Below the pieces are notes generated by a model. The model ran no database searches and was not told the DNA's origin. It was given only the letters and a program-made list of their open reading frames with translations. 64,000 nt of DNA from Tetramitus jugosus (Eukaryota; Protista; Heterolobosea), in NCBI GenBank assembly GCA_937625935.1, contig OW569354.1:434001-498000 (forward strand), in the 5' to 3' direction. Numbering within the stretch: the first letter of the stretch is position 1; every line of letters starts with the position of its first letter. Made by a program: the position numbers and the translations under genes. Of this stretch, positions 4,924 through 34,774 are shown in pieces.

Positions 4924-5806
4924 TTTTTTTTTTTTTTCCATACAACATTTGTTGCCACTTTATTCTATACACCACAGTGAGACATGATTCCGCTCAGCAC
5001 CGTTAGGTGATGAGCAGTGTTTCATCTCTCTTCACAACAGAATTGATATACACCTTGTATAGTGCCTTGATGCAGGCACGTTTGGTTGAGTCGACGACTC
5101 CCTTAATCCTTTTCTCTGCCTCCCTCTTCTTGCATCCTTTAAGCTTCAGTTCCTCCAGAAGTTCCCCCCTAAAGTCTTCCTCTTTACCCATCAGACCTTC
5201 CAGAAGTCCCTCGGCAGATCTTTTGACGTTTCGTGGTTGGATCTCCCCTCCCACAAACAGTGTATCGTCGAACCATAGAACCAACTTGGCAGTGTCTGGT
5301 GGGTTCATCCTTTTCAACTTGTCTTTTAGTTCCTCTGCCACTTTACTTCTTGCTGCTTTGGCATAATCACACTCAACCAGCAGATGAATGATGGTCTCGG
5401 GGCTTTTGCCACAAAGAGAGCATGTAACATCACCTATGGCATTGTACAACTTCTGCATGACCACTTTCGTATGCAAGGTACCACTCCTGACCTGGTGGTA
5501 GAACCACAGCTCCTTCCTGTCCAGTCCAAAAGGACATTTCAAGAAATAGTTCCACTCCACTGACTTCTGCAACTCCGAATCAAGCCACCATCCTCCATTC
5601 AATCCAATAAATTCTGTCCTCTGTTTTACAAATGATTCCACTACTCCTTCTCGAATGTTGGGATCTCGTTGACCACACCATTAGCTAGCACCTTAATTTC
5701 CGTCTTACTAGTTCTTCTAGCAAGCAGCGACTCATTGCACGGCTTACCAAGCAGTTCCAGGTAGGCTTGCACTATTCTGTACTTTGCCGGACCAATCCCT
5801 TTCATA
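4924..5806 (-). mobile_element. 5'-truncated non-LTR (L1/Tx1/TRE-like) retrotransposon copy inserted upstream of tRNA-Val
   Basis: 14-nt poly(A) tail (T run 4924-4937), AATAAA at 4959-4964 on the minus strand, perfect 15-bp TSD TCGGACTATTATTGA (4909-4923 and 5807-5821), zf-RVT-like coding remnant. Confidence 0.9.
5003..5641 (-). pseudogene. C-terminal remnant of retrotransposon ORF2 (zf-RVT CCHC finger)
   Basis: CSLCGKSPETIIHLLVEC is the C-x2-C...E-T-x2-H-x4-C motif of L1-clade ORF2 C-termini. A frameshifted upstream piece (MKGIGPAKYRIV...) spans 5805-5641. Confidence 0.8.
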
Positions 5807-9118: not shown

Positions 9119-9650
9119 TATCGTTTTTTTTGTTGTAGCTTTCTCTTGTTTGTTTTGCTGTTTGGGTGTTGACAATGTCTGTCATCCTTGTTTGGTGTGT
9201 GAAGCGACTCTTGTCGGAGATATTAACAACAGTGCCCACAAACCCAAAAGATCCAGTAGTGAATGAATGAAGCTTCTGTTGAATTGGATTGATGTGGCGG
9301 ATGTCAGGCGTTTGACTCCAAAACCACACACTTGTTTTGAACAAGTTGAACTGCGAATACTGCGGAAGCTCATCATCAGGTGACTCATTCCGTTGAGAAG
9401 AGTCACCCAACGATAAAATGAAGTTGATCTGTTTCGTCTCCCTTCGTCCCACTTTTTCATCTGCACTTAAGGGTTGGAGTCACCTCAAAATTGCAGTGTA
9501 GTGGTGTGGTTCTTTGCATCTATCCACAAGTTTTGTGAAGCTTCACTTTATTCAGATTGTCATGTTCGTTTGAAGGAAGTTTCAATCAAGCCATAATATT
9601 TCGGGCCCAATGCACCAAGAGGGTGTTTTTTACAATATCCTGTCATGAGA

Positions 9651-10145
9651 TGTTCAGAGCAACGTTGAGAGGACATCCAGCAATTAAGATGATTCAATGA
9701 ATTTTCACCTATCAACCAAAGACAAAAGCCCTCTGTCGTTACTCTGGTCCGGTTGAGTAGGTGAAAGTTTTTGTTGGACGAAACAGACCAATTTGCTTTT
9801 GCACCCAAAGAATAAAGAACTGTTTCTGATTCACGAACTAATGGCCTGGAATGAATCTAGGAGTTAAATGATCACATTAAGTCACTGCAACAGTTTAAGT
9901 TGAGGAGCTTCAGAAGTTCGTTGTAGCAAGTTCGTATGGTCATTGTTTGGAAGTTTCAAGAGAACCATAACAGTTCGAATCAGAACATTGTTACCAAGTC
10001 AAATACTGATTGTCCTTCTTATTTGTTCAGAGCAACATTGAGAGAACATCCAGCCACTTTAATCACTGAGTTCGACTTACATCTCCCAACACAGGCAAAG
10101 TCCTCTGTCGTTGCTCTGGTCTGGTTGACGGGGTGTGAGTTTTTG
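9651..10145. repeat. Diverged direct repeat (about 125-nt units, 373-nt spacing), probably a decayed repeat-protein pseudogene on the minus strand
   Basis: TGTTCAGAGCAACGTTGAGAGGACATCCAGC...CCTCTGTCGTTACTCTGGTCCGGTTGA (from 9651) versus TGTTCAGAGCAACATTGAGAGAACATCCAGC...CCTCTGTCGTTGCTCTGGTCTGGTTGA (from 10024). Confidence 0.65.
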
Positions 10146-10260
10146 CTCTTATCCCATGATTGTTACAGGGAGACTATGAGAGCGTTGAGTTGTCCCTGGT
10201 TGGTTCTTTTTATTTCCGAGAATATTGTTTCCATTTATTTTAACTACACTTGTTATGTTA

Positions 10261-10390
10261 CAGACAAAAGTGTTCAAGGCTTAAGGATGTAGTTCGGTGA
10301 AATAAAACCCATAATAAAAAAATTATGATTTCCCGAGAAGACACATAGCAGCTTGATGGAGTGAGCCTTGGAGGTGTTCCACCATTTTGA
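10261..10390 (-). ncRNA. Putative Fanzor omegaRNA (scaffold overlapping the ORF 3' end and TIR; guide from the flank at 10280-10261)
   Basis: Nested hairpin TCGGGAAAT-CATAAT-T6-ATTATG...ATTTCACCGA ending in the transposon end. Position matches TnpB/Fanzor omegaRNAs. The 5' boundary is a guess. Confidence 0.6.
10281..10301. repeat. TTAA plus terminal inverted repeat (Fanzor-downstream end)
   Basis: ttaaggatgtagttcggtgaa; reverse complement of 13934-13954 with 2 mismatches. Confidence 0.88.
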
Positions 10391-12254
10391 TTAATTCTTT
10401 TGCGACCTTTTTCTTCCTCTTGAAGGCATCGGGACGTGACTGTCCATCCATTTCTGTTCTCAGTAGATGGAGCATGTTCTTGGCCGCATTGATGTCTCTG
10501 TTGTGAGTCACTAAACATTTAGTGGTTGCACACTGTTTAACTCCTCGGACGACAGAGACATTCAACGTTCCATTCTTGTCTATTCTCTTATGCTTGACTG
10601 GCTTCATGTGAGAATGGCAATGATGACATTTCTGACTTGTCATGAACTCGTCGATCATTTTCACTTTGAAGTGCTCATTCAACTTTTTCAATAGCTTTCC
10701 TTTTGGTGTTGGAGCATGTCCTTTGTAACAATGACCAAAACCAGCATTGCCCATCCCAATTAACATGCTTCTTCCATTTGCTCTCTTTCGAAAGTCATTC
10801 ATAACATTGGCAATCGTCTTATCTCTCATTATATAGCTATCCCAATTCAGTCTCTTCACCTTTGGGGTGCAATAAAAATTCAACAAATCATCCTCGACTT
10901 TCAATACAGAATTGATGTGTTCAAGGAACAGACCACTTGTTGGTACACCGGCCTGTTTGATTGAGTTTTGGAGTTCATCCAAGTTCTTCTCATTCATTTC
11001 GTTCCATTCTGCTTTGTATTTCAACAATCGCTTGGAGTTTTTTGAATGGTGGGACAGATGTCTATATGTTTTGTTAGACAACTCCCACTTCTTGCCATCT
11101 GAATCAACACAACTCACCAACGTAACAATACCCGGGTCAATCCCAACCAAATATTCAGCACCTTCGTTCATACTTGTTTCCTTCTTTCTCTTCTTTGCTT
11201 CTTTCTGGTCCTTGGATTCCTTTGCCTTATTGTTCTTGTGATTGCCAACGAGTTGATGTCTGAGAACAACAGAGGCCTGAATACCGTCAGTTCTGATTGA
11301 GTCGATTTGAATCTTCTTTGTTCCAACATTCAAACACTTGAGATTACACTTCAATTCAGTTGACTCCTCGCCCTTCTTTTGTCTTCCTTGTTTCTTCTGT
11401 TTAAGCATATCAACTAATTCCTTTGTGCCAATCTCCATACACCTGCACTTGAAATGAGACAAAGGAAGTAGTGCAAACGATTTCATATCATTGTTGATCA
11501 GAAATTGTTGAGCATGCCAGTAAAACTTCAGCATGTTATTGGTGTTGTTCTTCACAAATGATTCATCAATTACTTCATCAGTTTTAGCATCAACAAGTGT
11601 TCGAACCTCTCGGATCAACACAGGAATCGTCTCTATCAACTCTTTTGGAGGCAATTTGATAAAATCGTGGACAGGAGTGCTAAATGTCAACCTTCTGATA
11701 ATGTATTCAACAACCCTTCTTTGTTCTGACTTTGGAATAGATGAGTCACTGTGTAGTTGATTCATTCTGACCCTCAGATACTTCCTCAGTCTTGGTTCCA
11801 ATGTGAACTTGAGCATGTTGGAGATGTTGACATTGAGAGACCTGGCAACATAATTGATGGACGTGGCAAAACTCTGATAAATCTTTCTGAGTTTGACTAC
11901 TACATCGTCCATGTTGACAGACTCGTTGATGAGACTTAAGTTATTGTCTCTTGGTTTTGAATTGCGTCCAAACAACACAGAACCTAATCTTTGAAGAAAC
12001 ACTTGATCTAATAAAGGGATTTGATAGTCAGACTCCAAGTGCCTCAAAACGAATATGTTTATAAATCTTGTGAGTCGAAGAGCAATCCTTGTAATCTCCA
12101 GAGCTTGAGTCTGTATGATTGGTAACAGAGTTGGATGATGCAACAACAGAGACTTCAGACCGACCTTGACCACGTAATGTGATGAGTATTCATTCTTTTT
12201 GACAGTCTCTCTCTTTCTCTTTCTCTTGCCGTCCTTAGGCACGCCTCGTGGCAT
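10323..12254 (-). CDS. Fanzor1 (eukaryotic TnpB-family RNA-guided DNA endonuclease), 643 aa
   Basis: RuvC-I VGIDPG; rearranged RuvC-II IDEFMTSQKC with GN at the canonical site; Zn finger CHHC...CATTKC; RuvC-III NRDINAAKN; FALLPL, IRTDG and RPDAFKR motifs; N-terminal basic NLS KRKRKR. ATG at 12254 follows a CAA-rich leader. Confidence 0.93.
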   Translation of the reverse strand: MPRGVPKDGKRKRKRETVKKNEYSSHYVVKVGLKSLLLHHPTLLPIIQTQALEITRIALRLTRFINIFVLRHLESDYQIPLLDQVFLQRLGSVLFGRNSKPRDNNLSLINESVNMDDVVVKLRKIYQSFATSINYVARSLNVNISNMLKFTLEPRLRKYLRVRMNQLHSDSSIPKSEQRRVVEYIIRRLTFSTPVHDFIKLPPKELIETIPVLIREVRTLVDAKTDEVIDESFVKNNTNNMLKFYWHAQQFLINNDMKSFALLPLSHFKCRCMEIGTKELVDMLKQKKQGRQKKGEESTELKCNLKCLNVGTKKIQIDSIRTDGIQASVVLRHQLVGNHKNNKAKESKDQKEAKKRKKETSMNEGAEYLVGIDPGIVTLVSCVDSDGKKWELSNKTYRHLSHHSKNSKRLLKYKAEWNEMNEKNLDELQNSIKQAGVPTSGLFLEHINSVLKVEDDLLNFYCTPKVKRLNWDSYIMRDKTIANVMNDFRKRANGRSMLIGMGNAGFGHCYKGHAPTPKGKLLKKLNEHFKVKMIDEFMTSQKCHHCHSHMKPVKHKRIDKNGTLNVSVVRGVKQCATTKCLVTHNRDINAAKNMLHLLRTEMDGQSRPDAFKRKKKVAKELIKMVEHLQGSLHQAAMCLLGKS

Positions 12255-12588
12255 AATGTTTTTGTATTTGTTGTGTGGCGTATTTGTTGTGTGAGTTGAA
12301 TCAAACAGCGAAAAAGACAACGCTTTTTAAACCGAGGTAGATGGCCGTTGTCGTTGTAAAGACAGTCTCAACGGAAATTTTTACAACTGCACCAATTCCG
12401 CAGCTTAGAGGAAACTGATACAACATTTATTGTATTTTTTTATAATATATCCACCTATCTATCCAATCTTGAACCAAACGAAAGACAACGAAAAACTTTC
12501 TCTCTGACACGACAACAACAACAACGAAAAACACAAGTCGCACAACGAACATCAACAACAACAACAACAACCAAATCAATCAAAAAAG
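12255..12588. promoter_or_regulatory. Putative bidirectional promoter inside the transposon
   Basis: AT-rich core (12425-12450) with CAA-rich leaders pointing outward on both strands, to ATGs at 12254 (-) and 12589 (+). Confidence 0.35.
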
Positions 12589-12610
12589 ATGGAGAGTCGA
12601 CAAGAGGTGT

Positions 12611-13258
12611 CTATTTGCAGTGTGCATTGTAGATTCTCTGAGCAAGTTTCAAGTAGGAGAATACAAGCGGTACCAATGTGTATTGAATTCTCTTGACACC
12701 ACCCTGACCAAAGTGCTTTCTGGCTGCGGCCAAAACTTTAAACAATTGATCAGTATCGCTATTATCAAACAAATGAACCAATCTGGCAATCAAGTTCTGT
12801 TCTTCTTCGAAATCTTCGAGCAATGTTGCAGCTATTGGTGAGTCGTCAGAAGGTGAGAATGTTGTTTGGTCTTCCTCATCCTTCAACAGTGGACGAATCA
12901 AATCAAACAGTTTGTTCACTTGTTCAAATGTTGAAATCTTGTGTCCATTGTCAAGTGCGCATCTCACAATGCTCAGTGCAATAAACTTTCTCTGTTCATA
13001 TCCAAGAGAATGAATAATATCACCATACTTCTCCAACTTCAAAACTGTTAGCACATTGTTGTATGACTCGAGTGGCACCAACAACAATCGCTTCAACATC
13101 TCTACAATTTCATCTGAAGCAAGTGCAGTGCTATTCAATTGACTAGCAATGTTATTAATAATCTTGTTGACATAGTCAGTGTTATCAGGATATGTTTGAA
13201 GAGCAAGTGTCATCAATGAGATCTGAATACTCAAGTTATCGGACAATTCAACACCTCT
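12611..13258 (-). pseudogene. VPS35: Captured internal fragment of retromer subunit VPS35
   Basis: ALQTYPDNTDYVNKI, EDFEEEQNLIARLVHLF and ARKHFGQGGVKRIQYTLVPLVF match central VPS35. N- and C-terminal parts are absent; an intron-like remnant precedes it (13307-13259). Confidence 0.85.
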
Positions 13259-13379
13259 CTAATGGTATCAATAGGACAGAATTTGACAAACGTCAGAAAA
13301 CTCATACTCATCATCAGGTCACTCGCATTCACGATGTCCTTCAGAGTGTTTGTTTTCTGTTTTTTGCAAGTTTTTTTTG

Positions 13380-13721
13380 ATGAAAAAAATCAATGAACAA
13401 ATGGGAAAACAAGGAAAAGGCGCCAAAAGAAGACATAACCAACACCAACAATTGGTAAAGTTTGGAGTCAAAAGAAAAGTAAGAATAACCGATATACATA
13501 TTGATTTATTTGTGTATCTAGTTGGTTCGTTCCTTGGTGTAGAAGATGTGTTGAATTTGGTATTGACGTGTCGGGATTTTCGATCTTCGATGGTCAATAA
13601 TCTATCAACAATAAGGTCTTATATGGACAATTTGTACTCACACTGTTTGGCCGTTTGCAAGTCAGGCTTACCGTGCAAATTGCAAAGGAAATTTTTTGTG
13701 CCTGTTTTGATTGCTTGTTGA
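13380..13721 (+). pseudogene. F-box-like ORF with Cys-rich motif, decayed downstream
   Basis: ITDIHIDLFVYLVGSFLGVEDVLNLVLTCRDFR fits the F-box pattern; CLAVCKSGLPC follows; frameshift-like continuation after a T-run. Confidence 0.5.
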
Positions 13722-13933
13722 ATCAACCAGTACTTGACCGCATCCTGGGCAGAACCATGAGGCAGTATTCATTATAATACTCTTGGCTGAGACGGAACCA
13801 CAGCCGGAACAGAACCATTGATGAGATGTGGCAACCATGATCGTAAGCTTGTGTTTGTGATTGGGTGTCGTGCACCTGTTTTTTTGGGCAGTCTGGAAAT
13901 TTATAGGTAGAGTTCTGAATTTATACGTTGAGG

Positions 13934-13954
13934 TCCAACGAACTACATCCTTAA
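13934..13954. repeat. Terminal inverted repeat plus TTAA (Fanzor-upstream end)
   Basis: tccaacgaactacatccttaa. Confidence 0.88.
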
Positions 13955-14081: not shown

Positions 14082-14777
14082 TTATGTTGGAATGACCATT
14101 TGATGTCTTTTGGCATACATGATCTTGACATATCTGTAAATGGCAAACACTGCATAGGTAACAAACATGATTCCCAAGAAGACACCAGAAATAACATTGG
14201 CAGCAATCAATCCAGGCAACACAATACTTGCACCAGCCAAATAGGAAGTAAAAATGATCTCCACAATCACGAGTGGCACATAACACACTGCAATAATCAG
14301 TGAGAGCAATGCCTGGAAGAAGCCATACACTTGAGCCTTTGCCAACTCGGTCTGATCATCTGCCTTGGCCAACTTGTAACTCTTTTTGGCGAGAAGAGCA
14401 GTAGCGAGACCGAGTGAGCACAACACTACGATATAGAATGCGTAGATGCACATGAGAACGGCTTGGAATGCGACATAAATCTTTCCCCAGTTGACTCTAG
14501 GTGGCTTTGTCTGCTTTTGATCATAGTCACGTGCCCAACGAACCGTACTGTTCATTCCAATGCAACTAAAGATGAATAGAACGATAGAGTAGAGCAACAG
14601 GACGACAACTGCAACGATCAGAGCAATTGTGAGAATCTTGGTACCAATGTTGAGCACTGCAACGGCTCTCGAGTTGGTATGAGCAATGTTTCGATCGAAA
14701 CTGACAGTGTCTCCAGCTTTGACATAATCCTTTTTGCCTCCCTTCTTTCCTACTTTGGGTAACTTGAATTTGACCAT
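14082..14777 (-). CDS. Four-TM membrane protein of unknown function
   Basis: 231-aa ORF with 4 hydrophobic segments and a CAA-rich leader; 3' end uncertain. Confidence 0.75.
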   Translation of the reverse strand: MVKFKLPKVGKKGGKKDYVKAGDTVSFDRNIAHTNSRAVAVLNIGTKILTIALIVAVVVLLLYSIVLFIFSCIGMNSTVRWARDYDQKQTKPPRVNWGKIYVAFQAVLMCIYAFYIVVLCSLGLATALLAKKSYKLAKADDQTELAKAQVYGFFQALLSLIIAVCYVPLVIVEIIFTSYLAGASIVLPGLIAANVISGVFLGIMFVTYAVFAIYRYVKIMYAKRHQMVIPT

Positions 14778-27244: not shown

Positions 27245-30200
27245 ATGAACAATAACAACAACAATAACAAGGAACAAAAATCGTTTCATCATTCCATACA
27301 GGAGATTGGACGGTTGTACGCTGCAAAACGAGAACTTCTTGAAACAACATTTCCAGAGCTCTTCTCCAGTGAGCACACATGGAAACAACACACGGAACAA
27401 TGGTCGAAACTGTATGAGGAAATTTTTGCGGGGGTAACAGAAACTGCGGGAGAAGATGGGAGCGGAGTAACAGCTCCGTCACAATCAACCAACAACAAGG
27501 GCGGCGCCAACGGACAAAATTTACAGAGTCATTGGCGCCATAATTTTACAAATAAGCCAGAGACCGTGTTGGTTCAATGGGAGAGGCACGTGGCGCTCCT
27601 GTGTGAAAAATTGGAATATTTTATAGCTGAGAAAAAGGAAGTCAGTGTTTTGAACTCGACAAAGTATATCAATGATGTATATTCTGTATATTACTCTATT
27701 CAATCGTATGTATATATTCATTCACATGCACACATAGATCTGTCAGTTGTTTGTGGTTGTTGTCTTGAACGTTTGTCTGACTCAACAAATTTTTTTTCTC
27801 ATAAAACGTCATACGAACGAATAGCTTATTGTCGCCCAATGAAACAAAACAGTGGTTATTAGATCAGTTGAAACCTGAAGCGAAGCAATTGTGGAACATT
27901 GTAACATTACAGCAAAAAGAGAGAAGAGACAAACAAGCAGAGCACCAACAAGAAATCCTAAAGGACTATCGGGACACTGATTTGCCTATTGTGAACGAGA
28001 TGACGTCAGGTGAAGGTAGCTACGATCCAGATATGACATGTGATTGGTATCACTTTTCAGTCACACTGGAGAACACTCTATTGGAGTGCAAGACTCAAAT
28101 GAACATGCACATGAATCCATATATCCATGTAGAACAAGTTCAATTCAAGTACGATTCGAAATACATGTTGCTTGCACGGTATTTTTTGATGAGTCATAGC
28201 ATGGAACTGTTTCAGAGCCAAAAAATGCCTGTAACGGTCGATAATATTGCATCCATGAGATACACGAGGTTCAATTTGTTTGATTGTCAGTATGAAGTGA
28301 TTCATTTGAGAGATTTGATTGCATTTACGAGAAGAAATGATTTGCTCATGAGTTTTGCAGACATGTTACTCACAGAGGCAAAAGGTATTTATACTTATCC
28401 TTGTTTTCAGATCGTGTTTCTCTCTCATGGTATTGTCATTTACTAACCAAGATGTTGTGTACGTGTCATTTTGAACAGAAATTCAATCCAAAAACGAAAA
28501 AACAAAGCAGTTTTACGTTCATTTGAACAAGGCTTCATTGGAGTTGTGCTATGCACAAAAGAGCTTATTTTGGACCGAGTTTCGGAGGTTGTTCTTCTTT
28601 GTCAACAAGGAAATCACTTCCATACCTGATGATTCGACTCAGAGGAACATTATCCGAACAAATGCACTGAGAAAGGCAGCTAAGAAATATCACTTTGATA
28701 TCATGTGGACATCGGATCCAGAGCGATATCAGTATGAGAAGAGACTTCAGGCCATCTTGACAGAAAACAAAGTTCTCGTCAAAAACTTTTCATTCGATGC
28801 CAAGGTTGTGAAGGAGTTGGTAGGAACAGACAAGTTGGAAGAGTTTCCTGCAATGCTCTTAACAAACAACCATCAATCGTTTGAGCCAGGTGTTTTGGTG
28901 TTTGCTGATATGAATATTCATTTTGTGTCCTTTATGCACAACAAGGAAGCAAGAACCAACATCAGTGTGTCATACTCGCAGATTTTGAACGTGGACTTTT
29001 TCAACGCATCGAGTTACTCGCCTTCGAATGTCGTTGTGTTGAAAAAGGATGGAGAACAACTTCATTTCTTTAGTGTGATGAACATTCCAATATGCTCCAC
29101 AATTGTGCTACGGAAAGCAAAGGAAGCGGAATATATGATCAAAAAGACTGGTGAGACTGGAGTGATCAAGGATGGAATGATGACAAAGCAGGGTAATTCT
29201 GTGAAGACATGGAAGGAGCGATTTTTCGTACTGTATCCAGATCGGTTGATATACAAGAAGGATCAAGCGTCCACCAAGGAGATGGGCCAAATCCCACTCA
29301 AGAATGTTTTGGGCATCGAGAAGGATGTCTTCAACAAGGACACATTTGCATTTAATGTATTGACCGTGAACCGACGATATATATTGCACTGTCAGAGTTC
29401 GAGAGAACAGAGTCAATGGGTCGCAGCGCTACAAACAACATTGAAGCGACAAAATCTTCTGTATCCATTCGTCCATGTGACAGTGGGTAAGAGGAACTTT
29501 AGAGGCAAGTTCCAGAAGAGAGTACTGCAGTTTGATTTTCTGAACAAGAGAATCAATAATTTGAAGGCAGATGCAGTGAAAAAGATGCATCCATTTGCCA
29601 ACGTTGTCTCTAGTACTTTAGACAAGAAGGACAAGTGTCATATTATGATTAATTTCCAGAATCAACCAAAAACAGAGTACGATATCTTTACGCTACTCCC
29701 AGAGCACGCAAACCTGATCGAGAGTCTTTGCTCTCTGGTCAGCAAGAATCCATCCATATCTGTGAAGGAAGTATATGCCCACACGAGCGGTTTATTGGAA
29801 AAATCTGGCTTTGCATATGAGAAATCGAAAAAGAAGCGACCAGTTTTTGCTCTTGCTTCAGCTGTCTCATTAGATACTGCTGTGAAGCGTTGGCTAATTC
29901 TTCAAGCAGGTCAAATTGTTGTATATAATGGCTCATGTGATGGATATCCACTATATTGTCTATCTCTTCATGATTGCACAGTCTCTGGTGGTCAAAGCAA
30001 CAAGGAGGAGATGATTATTTCGCTGAAGGACGGATCACTGAAGAAATTCGAGTTTAGTTCTGTACAGGAGTGCGAAGAGTGGGTAAAATTGTGTCGTAGA
30101 TACTCAATGGAGAGAACCAACGATGAATTCTTTGCTGAGCGAGAAACTATCGTTCTAAAGAGAGATTCTGTGGCTAGTCCTGTAACAGAAGAGGAAGAGT

Positions 30201-33957: not shown

Positions 33958-34774
33958 TCAATGTCCATGTTCCAACAAGTATCCCACAACTTCTGTTCTT
34001 TCATTGTAAAAATTCTGAAATTGTTGGGCAATGTATTGAAATGGCTCTTCGACCATGTTGGAGTCAGCCATGGCAGACATCTTGTAAAAGCTCAGGTTAT
34101 GACTCTTAGCAAATCCTTCACCCTGTATTGGTGACACCTTCTGGAATGCGGTTTGATCGGACTTGTTCCCGATCAGCACACCAATTAATGTTGGAGAATG
34201 TTTCTTCTTGTCTGTTGAAGAAGGCCTTGACTTGGCACACTTCTCATACCATTTCTGAGCATTCAAGAAACTGGATTCCTTTGTAACATCATATACAATG
34301 ACAAAAGCATTGCAATCCTCCAACTACGAATGAAATCATGTGTGAACAAACTACATGGAGTTAATCATTGGAAGATGTACATACCAAACCATCCACCGTG
34401 TCCTCATACAGTTTCGAGCCACCAATATCAAACAAGTACAACTCTATCTCGTCCATTGGCATTTGGTGGTGCCTGTGACCAGATTCAACAGGCATCTCCA
34501 CATGACCAAGCATTTGCTGTTGCAACGTGCTCAGTTCATCTTGATGATACTCGTCATCAGGGATCACCTCTCTCGGAATGACGGGAGTATCGGATGGAGG
34601 AGCAGTGAAGGAGCTGTTGGTACTAGGCAAGAGAATCTCCTTTCGAAAGACCTGAGGATAACTGGTTATGATGTACTGGTTGGGAAAGTTCCTCTCAACC
34701 AGCATCTTAATTATGGATGTCTTACCGGTTGTCGCATCTCCACAGAGGACAACTTTACATCTGAGCTTGACCAT
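33958..34774 (-). CDS. IFT27: IFT27/RabL4 small GTPase (intron 34384-34324)
   Basis: MVKLRCKVVLCGDATTGKT, IELYLFDIGG, VYDVT, GVLIGNKSD; no C-terminal prenylation motif. Confidence 0.82.

Follow-up and report, generated by a model that had tools for sequence, protein, structure and literature searches.

A Fanzor1 gene in a TTAA-bounded, non-autonomous transposon of Tetramitus jugosus, in a copy that looks recombinant

The RNA-guided nucleases of the Fanzor1 class are marked by a DPG motif, a glutamate six residues ahead of the zinc finger and TDG in the WED domain, and the terminal inverted repeat (TIR) and target site duplication (TSD) together build the stem at which their guide RNAs end (PMC10711439). 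The 5' TSD forms part of the target-adjacent motif (TAM), and a review of September 2026 gives the hosts of Fanzors as Mariner, Sola2, MuDR, Harbinger, Helitron, Crypton, hAT, EnSpm and piggyBac, without Kolobok (PMC13565253); for GtFz1 the TAM is TTAA (PMC10432273). Kolobok elements, which occur in Naegleria, are recognised by a TTAA TSD and 5'-RR..YY-3' termini (PMC9587614), and their lineages often bear accessory nucleases (KolobokP, D and E), Fanzor being absent from the accessory genes described (PMC9587614; PMC6004289). We analysed a 64-kb window (the whole stretch of 64,000 nucleotides, gene-dense and with a GC content of ~41%) from contig OW569354.1 of Tetramitus jugosus, in which a Fanzor1 gene lies inside a 3,666-bp element flanked by TTAA. 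The locus as a whole is best, and in our estimate rather probably, explained as a non-autonomous TTAA transposon with a homing Fanzor1, the copy in the window being a recombinant with a damaged guide RNA scaffold. Our literature search retrieved no paper joining Fanzor with Tetramitus or Heterolobosea; Naegleria Fanzor2 is known. The review was also the one paper retrieved that mentions Fanzor and Kolobok alike.

The nuclease and the boundaries of the element

The open reading frame (ORF; 10323-12254, minus strand) runs uninterrupted for 643 aa and contains D373 (in GIDPG), E536, D587 (in NRD) and a four-cysteine (C4) zinc finger (C543, C546, C575 and C580), together with basic tracts at both protein ends that are putative nuclear localisation signals, as a preliminary description of this locus had read it; TDG stands at residues 322-324. 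A Pfam search of the protein returned a TNB domain, and SpuFz1 was the sole solved structure found as a relative by sequence. The arrangement D-x(125,275)-TS-xx-C4 finger-x(5,50)-RD, which defines Fanzor and TnpB (PMC3627910), was present as D373, T539-S540, the four cysteines and R586-D587. The marks of the Fanzor1 class (D373-P-G, E536 followed by C543, and T322-D-G) were each at least 90% conserved among 123 homologues, in which D587 was conserved too. An AlphaFold model built from the 123-sequence alignment (pLDDT 91) gave TM-scores of 0.60-0.69 against the three solved Fanzor1 proteins (SpuFz1, PpFz1 and GtFz1; PDB 8gkh, 9cf1 and 9cer), at 14-19% identity in the structural alignments, compared with 0.23 against Fanzor2 (9b0l) and TnpB (8h1j), and it matched the enlarged REC/WED fold that is distinct from both of the latter. 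The DPG motif, the shifted glutamate, TDG and the modelled fold therefore indicate that the encoded protein is a Fanzor1, in keeping with its earlier classification. Sister to the clade stands P0010, a 971-aa Fanzor with a weak N-terminal HMG-box match (E=6e-5, below the curated cut-off).

The element extends from TTAA at 10281-10284, its 3' end, to TTAA at 13951-13954, its 5' end; the former would provide the closing bases of the predicted omegaRNA scaffold, and the latter is the predicted TAM. The TIR is a perfect 12-bp repeat starting with GG (16 bp when TTAA is counted), and both the extent of the unit and its repeat were thus as originally reported. Perfect inverted repeats of at least 16 bp with arms less than 10 kb apart numbered just three in the window, namely this TIR, a CAA microsatellite and one 17-mer without a visible TSD. 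The arms of the 17-mer (27404-27420 and 34401-34417) lie 7 kb apart, at least one of them within an ORF, and the repeat is probably due to chance. Right ends reading CC|TTAA were also present on five relatives from other samples, L001, L004, L005, L016 and L021. Four of these are 75% (L001), 59% (L004), 96% (L005) and 40% (L021) identical, indicating that the ends are a feature of the clade. L016 (600-645) is a Fanzor copy with an internal deletion and a shortened right end, CAGTACC|TTAA.

Reads were used as assembled contigs, whose depth is a rough guide, from the organism's own DNA run (X1), a groundwater strain (X5) and a probable RNA run (X4). Single X1 contigs inside the element were ~500-950 deep compared to ~52 for flank contigs (~10-16x), a rough sign of many copies. 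The empty site that the preliminary description had proposed to look for was found in X1, as a contig of depth 32 that joins 10283 to 13953 with a single TTAA and has an A-run one base longer. Since this contig has about half the depth of the flank, the insertion is probably present on one haplotype only. Two further joints, 10315 to 13919 and 10315 to 13779, represent short derivatives carrying the same ends. The earlier claim of a non-autonomous TTAA transposon with TIRs is therefore supported by the empty site, the multi-copy depth and the independent insertions. The empty site of X5 is without 14 nt adjoining TTAA on the guide side (10259-10280; one contig, depth 7.5), and this loss could be a cleavage scar, an excision scar or a plain indel. 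Read joints spanning ~4,250 bp, with unknown letters in the middle, were also seen from 10132-10223 to 14399-14468, possibly from a divergent empty haplotype.

Probable chimeric ends, predicted guide RNA and proposed homing

Two families of TIR were distinguished, both of which start with GG. Family A (GGTGGCGG) was found on L001, L004 and L005, as well as on further copies in X1 and X5, which depart from the window sequence at 10309. Family B (GGATGTAG) ends the distant Fanzor loci L017 and L021-L025, and the right TIR of the window copy (10285-10296, minus strand) is of this type. The whole right end (10285-10315, minus strand), comprising the family-B end and the 3' strand of the scaffold hairpin, matches that of L021 (31 of 35 positions identical), a locus with 40% protein identity, and the junction to family-A sequence falls at ~10309-10315. 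The interior of the element, from 13691 to 10343, is 99.8% identical to L020 across 3,349 bp, cargo included, L020 retaining 29 nt that are missing here. On the other side, sister copies part from the window sequence at 13691 or 13779, and the family-B left end common to the short derivatives spans 13779-13950 (minus strand; TIR at 13939-13950). Loose contig ends were seen at 10343 in X1 and X5. With a family-A interior and family-B ends, the window copy looks like a recombinant that holds a family-A nuclease and VPS35 cargo; a chimeric, end-swapped copy with a damaged scaffold looks to be new here. The family-B Fanzor of L021 (47-2034) is frameshifted near the middle in all contigs seen, giving two ORFs.

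The predicted omegaRNA scaffold (10281-10400, minus strand, with boundaries that we infer) overlaps the end of the ORF and is a hybrid. The 29 nt are missing at ~10344 relative to L005 and L020, and their deletion took with it an internal TTAAGG, one half of a hairpin lying upstream, and the stop codon. The final residues of the ORF are consequently read-through (in the sister protein P0155 the last residue is number 637), which had escaped the preliminary description, as had the VPS35 fragment. In all four intact relatives TTAAGG lies 69-82 nt ahead of the 3' end, and its pairing with the terminal CCUUAA was predicted in each when the core was folded alone, with a probability of 0.74-1.0 for five of the six pairs. 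This agrees with the terminal stem of TIR and TSD in Fanzor1 guide RNAs. Each of the four also has a hairpin just upstream of TTAAGG, of differing sequence. The terminal stem was not predicted in the window copy, whose scaffold had a fold z of -1.2 compared to -2.3 to -6.9 in the relatives, with 24 of 200 shuffles as good; a search of Rfam gave no match. The lost TTAAGG and the damaged scaffold suggest that the guide RNA of this copy may be dead, so that of the 'intact' system described earlier the nuclease ORF stands and the omegaRNA region, a deleted hybrid, does not. The predicted guide is the host flank past the 3' TTAA (10261-10280, minus strand), which by Fanzor1 architecture (PMC10711439; PMC10432273) would target the empty allele; its first 12 nt are found nowhere else in the window.

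We propose that this is a cut-and-paste element that would depend for its movement on a TTAA-specific DDE transposase acting in trans, which is most likely that of a Kolobok, and that Fanzor1 would serve the family as a homing nuclease, as judged from characterised Fanzor1 and TnpB proteins. RNA from the 3' end would fold into a scaffold whose closing stem, UUAAGG/CCUUAA, is drawn from TIR and TSD, and would continue into the flank, which would be the guide. The Fanzor would then cut the empty allele beside its TTAA TAM, and repair off the filled allele would restore the element. The window copy would have arisen when families A and B were joined in their shared scaffold hairpin, with deletion of the 29 nt. 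Its protein is probably still active and the copy probably remains mobile, but it is probably unable to guide the cutting of its own empty site and is probably not a working representative of the family. The surviving empty allele fits a loss of homing at this locus but falls short of proving it.

Several observations weigh against this explanation. L001, a complete 2.2-kb Fanzor-only element, has TCAA and not TTAA as its left flank, so that the comparison of copy flanks suggested in the preliminary description bore out the right ends of five relatives and failed there. An autonomous partner sharing the TIR was absent from the searchable collections, which exclude the T. jugosus genome. The predicted fold of L005 changes once 120 nt are included, and survival of the empty allele might equally reflect a young insertion or silencing. 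Finally, a weak hairpin (-11.6 kcal/mol) is still predicted for the hybrid scaffold, pairing the 5' strand of family A with the 3' strand of family B, and this scaffold could function. This hairpin and the pristine TIRs and ORF favour an alternative in which the hybrid omegaRNA works, having been re-paired via the new TIR, and end-swapping yields working new systems. We consider that alternative unlikely, if worth keeping in mind, because the hybrid folds no better than shuffled sequence and has lost both the upstream hairpin and the terminal stem that four relatives keep, and because the empty allele is still present.

Superfamily of the transposon

The TTAA TSD of Kolobok was found at both ends here, at five other right ends and, as a single TTAA, at the empty site, with the exception of TCAA in L001, and the GG..CC termini of both TIR families agree with RR..YY. 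Of the Kolobok assignment made in the preliminary description, the fit of the ends to the published signature and the occurrence in Naegleria therefore stand (PMC9587614), whereas a transposase sharing the TIR was not found. Pfam and domain searches detected no DDE transposase inside the element. Scans for the TIR pattern gave chance matches only in viral contigs (phage-like sequence without a second end), no match in genome contigs and one truncated copy in the one metagenome scan. Kolobok is thus the best superfamily label, and we infer membership from the ends, with a confidence barely better than even.

A mobiliser of another or unclassified kind is improbable, though a serious contender. 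It could insert AAGG..CCTT bluntly at TT^AA, be IS5/Harbinger-like, or belong to the TTAN Fanzor1 family of insect viruses. The empty site would be the same for a 4-bp TSD or a blunt TT^AA insertion, L001 would need no mutation if its target were a blunt TC^AA, and HAmv-1 and SFav-1 have TTAA/TTAN TSDs and 13-bp TIRs without an assigned superfamily. However, no IS5/Harbinger-like or other such transposase was tied to these ends, and the signature of Kolobok is matched with no further assumption.

Less probable still, the mobiliser of the same element, with the same homing role, may be a piggyBac transposase that is atypical in accepting GG..CC ends. The asymmetry of TCAA and TTAA in L001 recalls off-target piggyBac insertion, the target of piggyBac is TTAA, and piggyBac-Fanzor cases exist in Repbase (PMC13565253). 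The termini are nevertheless not those of piggyBac in its usual form, which has YY..RR and not RR..YY (PMC9587614), both TIR families here beginning with GG, and one-sided TTAA variants are also seen in Xenopus Kolobok (PMC6004289). A Sola2-Fanzor, with a 4-bp AWWT TSD and a remnant of Sola2 transposase, was rejected as the TSD here is TTAA and no remnant was found. The TA-duplicating Tc1/mariner-type element with AGG..CCT ends that the preliminary description offered as an alternative can hardly be upheld: the empty site is equally compatible with a TA duplication and Mariner is a common Fanzor1 host, but the base outside TA, expected to vary, is A at all seven ends counted as independent (p ~4e-5), and neither the 12-bp TIR nor its first bases are Mariner-like.

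Two relatives, L002 and L003, carry Fanzors 61% identical to the window protein, without TIRs. The sequence they share (L002 2375-4556; L003 1725-3897) spans TC to CTAT and looks Helitron-like to us. Both were nested in the TTAA-TIR clade in a quick tree (support 92, no bootstrap), which suggests a recent change to a Helitron-like vehicle in this branch.

Captured host sequence and comparison with known systems

Upstream of the Fanzor gene, beyond a non-coding spacer with a CAA-rich tract that is a probable promoter region (12255-12610), lies a captured VPS35 fragment of 211 codons (12611-13246, minus strand; Pfam E=1.4e-44, model positions 330-526 of 726). The fragment is near-identical in a cluster of ten sequences from other samples, two of which are linked to Fanzor. 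A 123-aa ORF (13350-13721, plus strand) with a weak F-box-like match (E=0.1) is a probable second piece of cargo. A Cys/His-rich open stretch (13671-13916, minus strand) gave weak zinc-finger matches only (C1_2, E=0.012) and resembles the remnant of a C1 domain; it had no convincing match as a transposase. Some copies appear to have a tandem duplication of ~13260-13388, as judged from loose ends and doubled DNA depth. The X4 run is RNA-seq-like, with intergenic bins without depth and short contigs, and its summed depth was 58,000-70,000 over the cargo, within a very deep stretch at 12600-13390; most of the Fanzor ORF had 17-45, and the next host gene had 170-300. Contig depth gives neither strand nor level, and the extreme depth of the VPS35 cargo in this probable RNA run is a lead only.

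Outside the element, the sequence to its left (9560-10145) holds a degenerate direct repeat of ~373 bp in two copies (74% over 128 bp), with multi-copy read depth and without a long ORF. An ORF at 5003-5641 (minus strand) resembles by eye the C-terminal, zinc-binding part of a non-LTR retrotransposon, and an NCBIfam search of it gave no match.

If our explanation is true, the Fanzor1 map would gain both a superfamily of hosts and a lineage of protists. The locus would also provide a family that is young, present in many copies and polymorphic for insertion, in an organism that is in culture and whose genome is assembled to chromosome level. Eukaryotic 'restorative homing', argued mainly from bacterial systems in the review (PMC13565253), would then be directly testable. 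Homing predicts that intact-scaffold copies have no surviving empty alleles and that scaffold-damaged copies keep them. The clade would also show how an omegaRNA adjusts when the transposon ends change, and its nuclease is compact, with TTAA as the predicted TAM. We think it very doubtful that the lineage is the first Fanzor1 to be borne by Kolobok, with easy vehicle changes (two TIR families, active end-swapped hybrids and a nested TIR-less Helitron-like branch), and that transcription of its VPS35 fragment far exceeds that of host genes and yields a functional RNA or peptide affecting the host retromer or control of the element. The pairing with a host not listed for Fanzors, as put forward in the preliminary description, holds as far as the review is concerned, but Fanzor1 elements with TTAA and without a classification have been described from insect viruses. 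Given this precedent for the TTAA architecture, the many Fanzor1 superfamilies already known and the missing Kolobok transposase, the finding is less striking than was first held.

Pack-type elements (Pack-MULE, Pack-CACTA) are transposase-less and carry captured host gene fragments between their TIRs. Unlike these, the element described here also encodes an RNA-guided nuclease, and its target is TTAA. The TTAA TSD, RR..YY termini, short TIRs and occurrence in Naegleria are shared with Kolobok (PMC9587614; PMC6004289), from which it differs in that no DDE transposase was found in or linked to it. The elements HAmv-1, SFav-1 and HVav-1 of insect viruses (PMC3627910; PMC10711439) are likewise non-autonomous, with TIRs of ~13 bp, a 4-bp TTAA/TTAN TSD and no assigned superfamily, and their TIR and TSD belong to the guide scaffold, as predicted for four relatives of the window copy. 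Those elements, however, have viral hosts, are ~1.95 kb long and carry Fanzor alone, and the likeness of the ends concerns TSD and TIR length. Among characterised systems, the protein resembles SpuFz1, PpFz1 and GtFz1 in its modelled fold, its triad of DPG, shifted Glu and RD, TDG and the C4 finger; the transposase-less loci bounded by inverted repeats, with short 'ghost' derivatives, resemble Spu-1, and the predicted TTAA TAM is that of GtFz1. Unlike these three Fanzor1 proteins, the one described here belongs to a separate, apparently heterolobosean clade, in which the predicted scaffold overlaps the end of the ORF and host cargo is carried.

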